NCBI GenBank assembly: GCA_002104945.1 | Contig: MCFH01000009.1 | Coordinates: forward strand, 434,001-498,000 | Direction of reading: 5' to 3' | Length of the DNA: 64,000 nt | Origin: Piromyces finnis finn | Lineage: Eukaryota > Fungi > Neocallimastigomycota | Shown: positions 59,172-64,000 of the stretch, in pieces | Layout: each line of letters opens with the position of its first letter | Position numbering within the stretch: the stretch's first letter is position 1 | Program-made: the position numbers and the translations under genes | Notes under the pieces: model-generated | Told to the model about the DNA's origin: nothing | Seen by the model: only the letters and a program-made list of their open reading frames with translations | The model's database searches: none

Positions 59172-61715
59172 ATGTCAAACGAAATTCAGGATAATGGATG
59201 GAGATTTGCTCAATGTTTCGGTGAAAAGGGCGATCTTGAAGAAATAAATGAAGGTATTATTTAATATGAATAAAAAGAACAGAAAAATATATTTATCAAT
59301 AAAATAAGACTATTTCAAGCATTCGTATAATGATAATGATAATAATAAAGAAAAGCATAAATAGTTACCATTTTCAATGTATCATCCATTTCAATTTTAT
59401 GTATAATCCATGACAGTAATAAAAAAAAATAAAAAATATTATTATTTTTTAGTAAATATATAAGAATTATAAAAAGAAATAAATTTACTTAATTGTCCAT
59501 AACATAAATATCATAAAAATAATAAAAATTAATTTATTAGCCGGATAAATATTTGAATTTTAAAATATATAAAAAAAAAAGACTTTAATAAATATATAAA
59601 TATTTTAAAGTAGATAAAATATAATTTATTAAAATAAAATAATTATTTTTTACTAAAAAATAAAAATAGCCGATATTATTTCTGCAGTTGAATTTGATGA
59701 AACCGGTGATTATTTAGCTACTGGTGATAAGGGTGGTAGAGTTGTTTTATTCGAACGTAATGACACAGTATGTATTTTATAAAAAAAAAATTATAATTAA
59801 AATATAATCATTGATTTATTTAATTAAAAGTGTTAAAAATAACAAACTTAACATTTAAAATCAATAAATAATTTAAACCAAAATTAAAAAATAAATTATA
59901 TTTTCTAAAATCTAAATAATGAATAGAAAAAGAAATGTGAATATAAATTCTATACTGAATTCCAATCTCACGAACCAGAATTTGATTACTTAAAAAGTTT
60001 AGAAATTGAAGAAAAAATTAATAAAATTCGTTGGTGTAAAAGACAAAATGCTGCTCACTTCTTATTATCTACTAATGGTAATTTATTAAAATATTTAATT
60101 CTTTTTAAAATTAGATATAATATTAAAAATTTAATAACTTATAAATTATAAACTTCTAAACAATTAATTTAAAAAAATAATATATATAATACGCTTCACA
60201 ATATTTTATTTGATTTTTAAAAATAATATTTTCCAAAAAATATAAATCAATATTATAAATATATGAATAAATAATTATTAGATAAGACAATTAAATTATG
60301 GAAGGTTTTTGAAAAATCAATTAAAGTTGTTTCCGAAAATAACTTATCTGATGGAATGCAAAAGCCAACTTCCTTTACTAAAGAAAGTTTAAAATTACCA
60401 ACTTTAATTCACCATGATACCATTATTACTGCTGTTCCAAGAAAAATATATCAAAATGCACACACTTATCATATTAACTCTATATCTGTCAATTCTGATG
60501 GTGAAAGTTATCTTTCTGCTGATGATTTAAGAATTAACTTATGGAATTTAGAAATTTCAAACCAAAGTTTCAGTATCCTTTTTTCATAATTATATTTCTA
60601 TTATTTATAAATAATATTTTTTACAATAATTTATAATAATCATTTTATAAAGAAAGTTATTATTTTTCTTAATTTCTTTTTTTTTTTTTTTAATAATTTT
60701 AAGATATTTTGGATATTAAGCCAGTAAATATGGAAGAACTTACTGAAGTTATTACAGCTGTAGAATTCCATCCAACTCATTGTAATACCTTTTTATACAG
60801 TAGTAGTAAGGGTACTATTAAAATCGGTGATATGAGAGCCGCTGCTCTTTGTGATCAACATGCTAAAGGTATTTATATATATATATATATAATTTACATA
60901 TTTAATTAAAAAAATATATATATTTAATAAGATTTATTAATATTAAATAATTATCATTATTTTAAAAATGAAAAATAAACAGTATACGGTGAGGATGATG
61001 ATAGTACCAACAAGACTTTCTTCTCTGAAATTATTTCATCTATATCTGATGTCAAATTTAGTCCAAATGGTCGTCACATTATTTCAAGAGATTATCTTAC
61101 TTTAAAGATTTGGGATGTTAACATGGAATCAAAACCAGTTCAAACTATCTTAATTCATGATTTAAGAAACAAACTTTGTGACTTATATGAAAGTGATTCA
61201 ATCTTTGATAAATTCGAATGTACTATGGATGGTACAGGACTGTATCCTTTTTCTATTTATATATATATAAATATTATTGCTATTATTATTACTTTTATCG
61301 TTCAAAATTAAAATATTATAATTATCACTTAACCAATCTTTTTACCATAAAATAATATATAAAATATTAAATATTAAAAATCATTTCAAATTCATATTTT
61401 TCATCATTTGATTTATAAATAAATAGTAACATATTAAGTGGTTCTTACAGTAATTACTTCCATGTATATAATCATGAAACTGAAAATGATATAGTATTAC
61501 AAGCTGATAAGAGTGTATTCCAAACTAAATACACTGGATCCGTAAAGAACAAGGGTCTTGAATGCCAAGTTTCACCACAAAAACGTGAAGAATTATACTA
61601 CAACATTAACTCCTTAGATTACAACAAAAAGATATTACAAGCTTCATGGCATCCAAAGGAAAATATTGTTGCTCTTGCTGCTACAAATAATTTATTCTTA
61701 TTCCAAAAAGTTTAA
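59172..61715 (+). CDS. CDC55: Protein phosphatase 2A B55 regulatory subunit, 7 exons, two U12-type introns
   Basis: [134 protein letters not shown]. Confidence 0.98.
60573..60703 (+). other. U12-type (minor) GT-AG intron in PP2A-B55
   Basis: Donor |GTATCCTTTT; TTTCTTAAT branch-like site at 60665-60673; splicing restores QSFNILDIKP. Confidence 0.85.
61242..61426 (+). other. U12-type (minor) GT-AG intron in PP2A-B55
   Basis: Donor |GTATCCTTTT; splicing at AAATAG|T restores [16 protein letters not shown]. The branch site is less clear (CACTTAAC 61326-61333 is distant; TCATTTGAT is near the 3' end). Confidence 0.75.
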
Positions 61716-62486
61716 AATCGATTTTTAAAAACTGAAATCAACCTGATTAATCAAAAGCATTACATTCATTCAAAAACATATATATATATAATATATATAA
61801 ATTGAAAGAAAGAAAAAAAGAAAGAAAGAAAAAAAAAAAAAAAAGTTAATAGTAAAAAAAAGTAATATATATAAAAAAAAAATGCTATAAAAATATATAT
61901 TAATAATAATACATTTTATTTATTATTATTAATTGGAATGAAAAAAAAAATTTTAGAATAATTTATATAAATATATTTTAATAATATAAATAAAAAAAAA
62001 GGTTAAAAAAATTAATAATAAAAATAATAATAATAACAATAATAATAAAAGCATAATTATAATGTATATTTAATAAATATGTTTTTATAATAATTATATA
62101 TAAAAAAAAATAAATAAAAAAAAATAAAAAAATAATAATAATAAATAAATAAATTTATATATATATAAAAAAAAAAATTAATTATTATAATAGAATTTTA
62201 TAAAACATGTAAAAAAAAAAAAAGGTAGAAATATAATAATATGTAACCCTATTTTTTTATATATATCTTGGAATTTCTTTTGGCGAAAATCTTTCAATTT
62301 CTAGTTTTATCAAAACTGTACAAAAAATATATATATATAGAAATCATTATACTCCTTTAAAAACCTTTTCACCAGTAACTATTATTGATATAGGAAGAAT
62401 ATATTCCTTCCTTCTACATTAAACACAAATAAAATAATTTTTTAATTATACAAAGAAGAAAAAAAAAAATTACTTTAAAATATATA

Positions 62487-62487
<1 letters not shown>

Positions 62488-62577
<90 letters not shown>
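62488..62577. repeat. (TTA)n microsatellite, ~30 units
   Basis: Perfect run between the convergent 3' ends of CDC55 and RPC1. Confidence 0.97.
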
Positions 62578-63063
62578 TTATTTATATTCAATAGTTTTTA
62601 TTTTTAATGAAATGGGGAAAAAAAATCTATAAAATTTTTTGTTATAAAAAATATATATTATATTTAATATTAATAAATAAAAATTTTTTATAAAATTATA
62701 CATAAATAGTTTAAAAAAAAAAAAAATACAAATTTTTAACAAAAGGAAAAAATGAAAATAGGTTGTTTGATTTATGTATATATATTATATATTTAAAAAT
62801 AAAATAAAAAAAAATCACTATTTAAATAGTTAAAAAATAATTGAATATATAAAAGAATAAATCATTTTAAATGTGTAAAAGTTTTGTATAAAAAAATTAT
62901 TTCTATTCTCTATAAATTATTCTTTTATATTATCATTTAAAAAAATTTTTTTATTTTGTTTTTCTAATGTAAATTAAAGATTATATATATTTTTGATATT
63001 ATCTTTTCTGTAGAAATGTAGAAATGAATAAATCTAGTTTTATATAGCTTTGTCTTTATGTTT

Positions 63064-63942
63064 TTATAATCTTAAATGATGAGTTTGACTGTCAAATAAT
63101 AAGTTATGTGGTTTTGGTAATTCTTTCTCTGTCGTATTAAAATTAAAAAAAAAAAAAAAAAAAAAGGTTAAGGAAAATAAAATATATTTATATTATGATA
63201 ATTAATAAATTTAAATAATAATATATATATTAAAAAGTTATAATAATTATTATTATTATATAAAAAGGATATTTTTGAAGTAATTTAAATATGCCTGTTC
63301 CAACATGCATTGGTATACCCATAATAACACATTCACTAACACCATCAATAGAATCTTTCTTGCCATAGAAAGAAGCATCAAAAAGATGATCAGTAGTCTT
63401 TTCAAATGAAGCCAACATTAATACACTATCCTTCATCTTAGCAATACCAAAACGAGTAATACCTAAAATTTCACCCTTGAAGGTCATCAAATCACTAAGA
63501 AGCATACAATGACGGAAATCTAATTGCATACCGTGGCTTTGCATAGTATATTGAATTTCCTTAATAATAGAATTTCTATATAAAGAGTAAAAAGGAAAAA
63601 AAAAAAAAAAAAAAAAAGAATGAGATATACATTTTTAAATAATCGATTTAACATTGCTATAATAAATATATTTACCTAGCAGCTTCAATACCCAATACTT
63701 GTTGCATTTCAATAATATGATTTGTTGAGGATTCTAAACCATTAACACCTAATAATAATATATACGAATTATATGTTTAATTATATGAAACTATTATAGA
63801 AGGCTAATTTTTTCTCTTCGCTTTTACCATTATTTACTTACCATCAATAGCCATAACTTCTCTTAAACCATAACCTTCGACGAGTAATTTCAATCCATCC
63901 TTTTCTTCATTAATAACTGCACGATTAATAGAAGGAATGCCC
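63064..63942 (-). CDS. RPC1: RNA polymerase III largest subunit, 3' exons only (gene continues beyond the window)
   Basis: [109 protein letters not shown]; last exon reached through an AT-AC intron. Confidence 0.96.
63134..63272 (-). other. U12-type AT-AC intron (last intron of RPC1)
   Basis: Minus strand: CAA AA|ATATCCTTTTT (starts 63272) ... TTTTCCTTAAC (63177-63167) ... T-tract ... TAATAC|G (ends 63134); the in-frame join gives a plausible RPC1 C-terminus. Confidence 0.92.
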
Positions 63943-64000
63943 TAATGTTTTTTATTTTTGAAATTTACATATATATTAATTTTATTATTTCATTATCATA

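Follow-up and report, generated by a model that had tools for sequence, protein, structure and literature searches.

The 3′ end of the RPC1 (POLR3A) gene of Piromyces finnis poses a question: how is the last coding exon joined to the rest of the message when the interval before it provides no GT donor? The locus lies on the minus strand near the end of the window, by which we mean the whole 64,000-nucleotide stretch of contig MCFH01000009.1 (positions 434,001 to 498,000) analysed here. Two kilobases of its minus strand match this contig of assembly GCA_002104945.1 exactly. A sequence-only reading, made from the letters of this DNA, had proposed that a consensus AT-AC U12-type intron at 63134-63272 hides the last exon. 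Our analysis supports this intron, with a probability of about 0.93: 63272-63134 (-) would be the last intron of P. finnis POLR3A/RPC1, of U12-type AT-AC class and ancient. Four things were observed directly: the splice signals, the fact that relatives conserve them, the junction as used by orthologous transcripts, and the match to the public P. finnis protein. The proposed intron held up against signals, reading frame, orthologues and public coding sequence (CDS) alike.

The identity of the gene was established from the penultimate coding exon (63273..63575, minus strand), which covers the RNA_pol_Rpb1_5 region and ends within a split codon, AA then G. Residues 2-99 of this exon aligned with residues 1266-1363 of human RPC1 (7a6h_A) at an E-value of 1e-47, and yeast Rpc160 was also matched. 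Scores were 164 bits for human RPC1 and 146 bits for yeast Rpc160, against at most 71 bits for RPB1 and at most 41 bits for RPA1; RPC1 is thus favoured over both paralogues, and the C-terminal tail is likewise of RPC1 type. Named members of the protein cluster agree with this identity. Upstream, an ordinary GT-AG intron (63576..63675, minus strand; GTAAAT...TATAG) serves for contrast. It is preceded by an exon at 63676..63748 (-) that matches the tail of the full-length Neocallimastix protein, and by a further exon at 63842..63941 (-). The gene runs past the window end, with its start ~6.2 kb beyond position 64000.

The penultimate exon closes with the codons GGC ATA TTT AAA TTA CTT CAA AA, the last base being 63273 (exon end ...CTTCAAAA), and ATATCCTTTTTATA follows from 63272 (-). 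The intron is 139 nt long (63272-63134, minus strand); it opens with ATATCCTTTTT, carries TCCTTAAC and closes with TAATAC. The 5′ splice site ATATCCTTTTT (63262..63272, minus strand) agrees with the extended consensus /RTATCCTT, as it does in all orthologues, and at least 11 nt are identical in L001, L002, L003/4, L096-98 and L106 from gut fungi and in the octocoral L015. The branch-site box TCCTTAAC (63167..63174, minus strand), with a presumed branch A at 63168, is kept as TCCTTAAC or TCTTTAAC in every orthologue; in its wider context, TTTTCCTTAACC at 63178-63166, it agrees with TTCCTTRAY. Past the branch box comes a run of 21 T residues (63145..63165, minus strand), and after it the 3′ splice site TAATAC (63134..63139, minus strand). 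The intron ends at 63134 and GACAGAG begins at 63133 (-); TAATAC then GA is invariant among orthologues.

There was no G at all in the 139-nt intron, and G+C content was 6.5%. Of the nine C residues, seven belong to one of three signals: donor, branch box or terminal AC. An intron with no G can hold neither a GT donor nor an AG acceptor. Over a longer span, GT was absent between 63304 and 63089 (-), the first of these positions lying inside conserved codons and the second inside the last exon, which confirms the earlier statement that no GT donor is available here. The number of motif occurrences is not informative: the window has 11 RTATCCTT matches where 8.2 are expected, and two copies of TCCTTAAC where 1.4 are expected, counts that are not significant by themselves. 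What is significant is placement at an exon end together with conservation in relatives. This donor was the only RTATCCTT across the whole RPC1 locus of three genera. Eight other RTATCCTT matches in the window were dismissed as chance occurrences, since they lack both a coding context and a branch box.

Joining 63273 to 63133 gave ...FKLLQK followed by a 22-residue tail, which aligned with residues 1350-1387 of the 1390 residues of human RPC1. The proposal of an in-frame AC join resembling the human RPC1 end was therefore upheld, as was the prediction that the nearby AG (63130-63129) would open a different, short frame: its use as acceptor gives ...QKERITKTT*. The last coding exon (63064..63133, minus strand) comprises the G, 22 codons and TAA, and matches residues 1374-1395 of the public protein ORX55348.1 (1395 aa) at 100%. 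This protein ends with exactly the residues predicted from the AC join. By tblastn, its residues 1272-1373 (100%) and 1374-1395 flank an interval of exactly 139 nt, which the public CDS skips precisely, and the end of the gene model maps to window position 63064. The description of the last exon as hidden is consequently accurate for a stop-to-stop ORF track and inaccurate for the public annotation, where ORX55348.1 includes it. The 22-residue tail may be essential.

Evidence at the level of transcripts came mainly from related fungi. Contigs of ~4.4 kb from five JGI samples (L099-L103) carried an uninterrupted 1395-aa Neocallimastix RPC1 ORF. In three genome assemblies this gene extends over 10.1 kb. 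At the junction, ...CTTCAAAA was joined to GACAGAGAAGG (the GACAGAG frame) with no intron. The spliced junction was also present in a sixth JGI sample (L105), nearest to the Piromyces-like L002 type. Mapping of the cDNA-like contig L099 on genome L096 produced 25 blocks, and the last junction was AT-AC with zero boundary ambiguity. The other junctions, classified with a simple script, included 17 of GT-AG type; of the remaining six, five were blurred by one-base offsets and one by a gap in the cDNA alignment. The full-length Neocallimastix protein was reached by a carrier-plus-fragments alignment, and not through representative proteins or a search with the Blastocladiella RPC1 region.

AT-AC termini are thus seen in mRNA for the orthologues (L099-L103 and L105), and the corresponding basis in P. 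finnis is the public CDS together with the share of sequence words found in RNA. RNA runs X1 and X2 contained 0.62 of the sampled 31-mers of 62950-63700, an indirect measure for P. finnis. Arithmetic from the exon coordinates gives an expected share of 0.59 for RNA lacking both introns and of 0.83 for RNA that retains the AT-AC intron. The spliced junction had no exact match in the metagenome contig collection; as JGI contigs do carry it, this blank indicates that the collections differ, and nothing more.

Comparison across gut fungi showed which parts of the intron are maintained. The P. finnis intron (139 nt) has the box TCCTTAAC with its presumed branch A 34 nt from the 3′ splice site, counted to the last intron base. 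The same box occurs in two Piromyces-like contigs, L001 (intron 119 nt, spacing 13 nt) and L002 (193 nt, spacing 29 nt), and in Anaeromyces robustus (L106; intron ~130 nt, spacing ~33 nt). In Neocallimastix (L003/4 and genomes L096-98) the intron measures 459-464 nt and the box is TCTTTAAC, at 42 nt. All of these relatives keep AA then ATATCCTTTTT, T(C/T)CTTAAC, and TAATAC then GACAGAG. The intron interior could not be aligned among the gut-fungus orthologues, the branch box being the only conserved internal element, and every orthologue uses as acceptor the first AC that follows that box. The last exon keeps the same frame and the same stop position in relatives, with synonymous changes (AAA/AAG, GAC/GAT, TTA/CTT) and a few conservative ones (N/T, Q/K, L/F).

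The reading frame upstream behaves differently once it passes the donor. ORF-type proteins that are identical over 90 exon residues all continue as QKYPF and then diverge completely, the pattern expected where non-coding sequence comes after a conserved AA + ATATCCTTT. This agrees with the sequence-only reading, which had taken the tail of the ORF track to be intron read-through: such tails diverge wholly after YPF among relatives.

Two further observations concern individual relatives. L001 and L002 (ENA ERZ27247043 / ERZ27247052) are identical over ~570 nt of exons and upstream introns, and the interiors of their U12-type introns are wholly different (119 vs 193 nt, spacing 13 vs 29 nt). Either strain chimeras were joined at the conserved exon during assembly, or the intron turns over very fast. 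The L001 contig is identical to L002 upstream of the intron and stops two bases into the last exon; assembly may have fused two strains in it. Separately, the public Anaeromyces model ORX78506.1 (1317 aa, partial; MCFG01000207.1, L106:7570-7700) reads through the orthologous AT-AC intron and so lacks the last exon (TEKALPKPHTLLFDSKTHHLRF*), located immediately 3′ of TCCTTAAC ... and the TAATAC acceptor. The comparison thereby flags a real annotation error in Anaeromyces robustus at this same intron.

The feature that departs from expectation is the distance from branch box to acceptor. For U12-type introns the optimum from branch site to 3′ splice site is 11-13 nt, and no distinct polypyrimidine tract is present (PMC3584512). 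The window has 34 nt and a 21-T run (63165-63145), so the word consensus, as applied earlier to this intron, suits the sequence of its branch box and not the position of the box. Spacings of 29, ~33 and 42 nt were seen in relatives; L001, at 13 nt, and the coral, at 11 nt, have shorter ones. T-rich spacers of variable length occur in L002, Neocallimastix and Anaeromyces, and are absent in L001 and the coral. The T run itself carries little weight, because such runs abound in this genome, whose G+C content is 18%. The tract in the U12-type intron may reflect a genome-wide slippage bias and not a signal. Ordinary GT-AG introns (window 63598-63620, minus strand; Neocallimastix L096) were also seen to have long T/A homopolymers upstream of the acceptor. 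The variation in spacing suggests that the T-rich spacer expands and contracts fast, and that this is tolerated by splicing.

A related arrangement was noted in the neighbouring PP2A gene, B55. Two of its introns, 60573-60703 and 61242-61426 (+), open with GTATCCTTT exactly at exon ends, with in-frame joins ...SNQSF + NILDIKPV and ...DGTGL + NILSGSY. A box TTCTTAAT is located 31 nt upstream of the first AG, and a weaker box CACTTAAC 94 nt upstream of the first AG. In both introns the cut falls at that first AG past the box, in parallel with the first AC in RPC1. Positions 60197-60232 fall within an AT-rich B55 intron.

The unusual spacing could mean that the intron is U12-dependent and the TCCTTAAC box is not the branch point at 29-42 nt, either a weaker site nearer the AC being used or the spacer being looped out. 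In its favour are the textbook optimum of 11-13 nt (PMC3584512) and the presence of TTTTTAAT-like strings near the 3′ end. These strings, however, lie 9, 6 or 3 nt from the 3′ end depending on lineage, positions that are both too near and inconsistent, whereas no internal element other than the TCCTTAAC box is conserved, and its spacing is 13 nt in L001 and, in the coral, 11 nt. We therefore consider a different branch point unlikely. The spliced Neocallimastix contigs imply that the AC is used even with the branch box 42 nt away; a box at that distance in Neocallimastix is compatible with accurate splicing, and for the P. finnis intron the sister genera provide the transcript-level support. 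If branching truly takes place at the box, the optimum of 11-13 nt would not hold for all U12 splicing. Tentatively, and at a little less than even odds, the minor spliceosome of Neocallimastigomycota might choose its 3′ splice site by a relaxed or different rule compared with that of animals and plants. The question of spacing is the sole part of the finding with some novelty.

A second possibility is that the intron belongs to the rare subclass of AT-AC introns that are U2-type and require U1/U2. Such introns exist, according to the citation of Wu and Krainer 1997 in the available text of PMC3584512, and the T tract before the 3′ splice site resembles that of U2-type introns in the same genome. 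Yet donor and branch box both conform to the U12 consensus (PMC2831892), the donor in full as ATATCCTTT and the box as TCCTTAAC, and both are kept from fungus to coral, making a U2-type assignment highly improbable. Least probable of all is that the interval is retained, or spliced by an AT-AG join at 63129, to give the read-through tail or ...QKERITKTT: an ORF does pass through the donor and the public Anaeromyces model reads through it, but the complete divergence of read-through tails after YPF, the use of AC in spliced orthologue contigs, and the conserved LLFD tail and fixed stop, kept by the AC frame only, argue strongly against it.

The preferred reading, a U12-type AT-AC intron using the conserved box, suggests the following course of splicing. 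The 5′ splice site /ATATCCTTT would be recognised by U11 and later by U6atac. U12 would pair with the TCCTTAAC box, whose adenosine at the presumed position would act as the branch nucleotide. The 3′ cut would then be made after the first AC past the box, at TAATAC then G. Joining of AA + G would produce the Lys codon of ...LLQK-TEKEL... and add the conserved 22-residue C-terminal tail. On this scheme the minor spliceosome of the fungus would have to tolerate a T-rich spacer of 29-42 nt. Rfam scans of 1-60190 and 60240-64000 found no snRNA genes in the window.

The age of the intron was judged from its occurrence outside the gut fungi. An orthologous U12-type intron was found in a distant lineage, the octocoral Paramuricea clavata (L015; GCA_902702795.2). 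Here TTA AAT AA is followed by ATATCCTTTT ... TTTTTCCTTAAC, then 11 nt, ending in ...CTAC then G TCA AAT. Codon, phase and the AT-AC U12 type all agree with P. finnis, and the NCBI protein is spliced accordingly, with LLNK then SNID. The survey of intron positions drew on metagenome-contig matches representing distant eukaryotes, at 69-80% identity. Eukaryotic contig types L009/L010 and L012 had GT-AG introns at the identical position and phase; beyond these introns an RPC1-type tail continues in frame. L011 showed a GTAAGT donor in the same phase, the donor side being the part seen. In the fish L014 the intron was absent from the same RPC1 position. Separately, a related RPC1 protein of 1404 aa is encoded on a 4319-nt contig, too short to hold introns.

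Several Closterium RPC1 models stop at this same residue. In L011:15270-15290 and in the Closterium models P0313, P0315, P0321 and P0322, the predicted protein ends right after FK.KQ[KR]. The cause is a GTAAGT donor in phase 2, which is translated as a stop codon (AA + G TAA); Closterium/L011-type models are probably also without the last exon.

For this small sample of sequences, the simplest history is that a U12-type intron was already in the fungus-animal common ancestor, at the least, and was kept in gut fungi and cnidarians. Under the same history, some lineages would have turned it into a major-type intron and others would have lost it. According to the searchable text of PMC10639083, conversion from minor to major is held to be the usual direction. 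The locus would then represent, in an essential polymerase gene, an AT-AC intron as old as the fungus-animal common ancestor or older.

Much of this is already known. Public annotation already models the RPC1 AT-AC intron, and published work covers minor splicing in P. finnis: minor introns and minor snRNAs are described for P. finnis and N. californiae in the searchable text of PMC10639083 (2023). That survey was, by the same text, based on annotated introns, and the P. finnis RPC1 intron is annotated. Within its searchable text, neither the RPC1 intron individually nor branch-site spacing in this group is discussed. We found no publication linking POLR3A to a minor intron. The locus accordingly has little discovery value, and serves instead as a clean, well-supported reference case.

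Hall and Padgett reportedly defined in 1994 the canonical U12-type AT-AC introns found in animals and plants. The P. finnis intron resembles these canonical introns (PMC3584512, PMC2831892) in its /ATATCCTT donor, its TCCTTAAC box and its AC acceptor, and also in being the single one of its kind among ~24 GT-AG introns of a housekeeping gene for information processing. It is unlike them in its spacing of 34 nt with a 21-T spacer, as against 11-13 nt and typically no pyrimidine tract. The octocoral intron (L015) shares with it the same codon (the Lys after LL[Q/N]), the AA + G phase, the subtype, the donor and the branch box, and differs in its length of 473 nt, its canonical 11-nt spacing and its lack of a T tract. 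The GT-AG introns at this RPC1 position (L009/L010 and L012, with the GTAAGT donor of L011) agree in position and phase and differ in having the major-type donors GTGAGT and GTAAGT. Major-type donors at the same position are the pattern expected of minor-to-major conversion.
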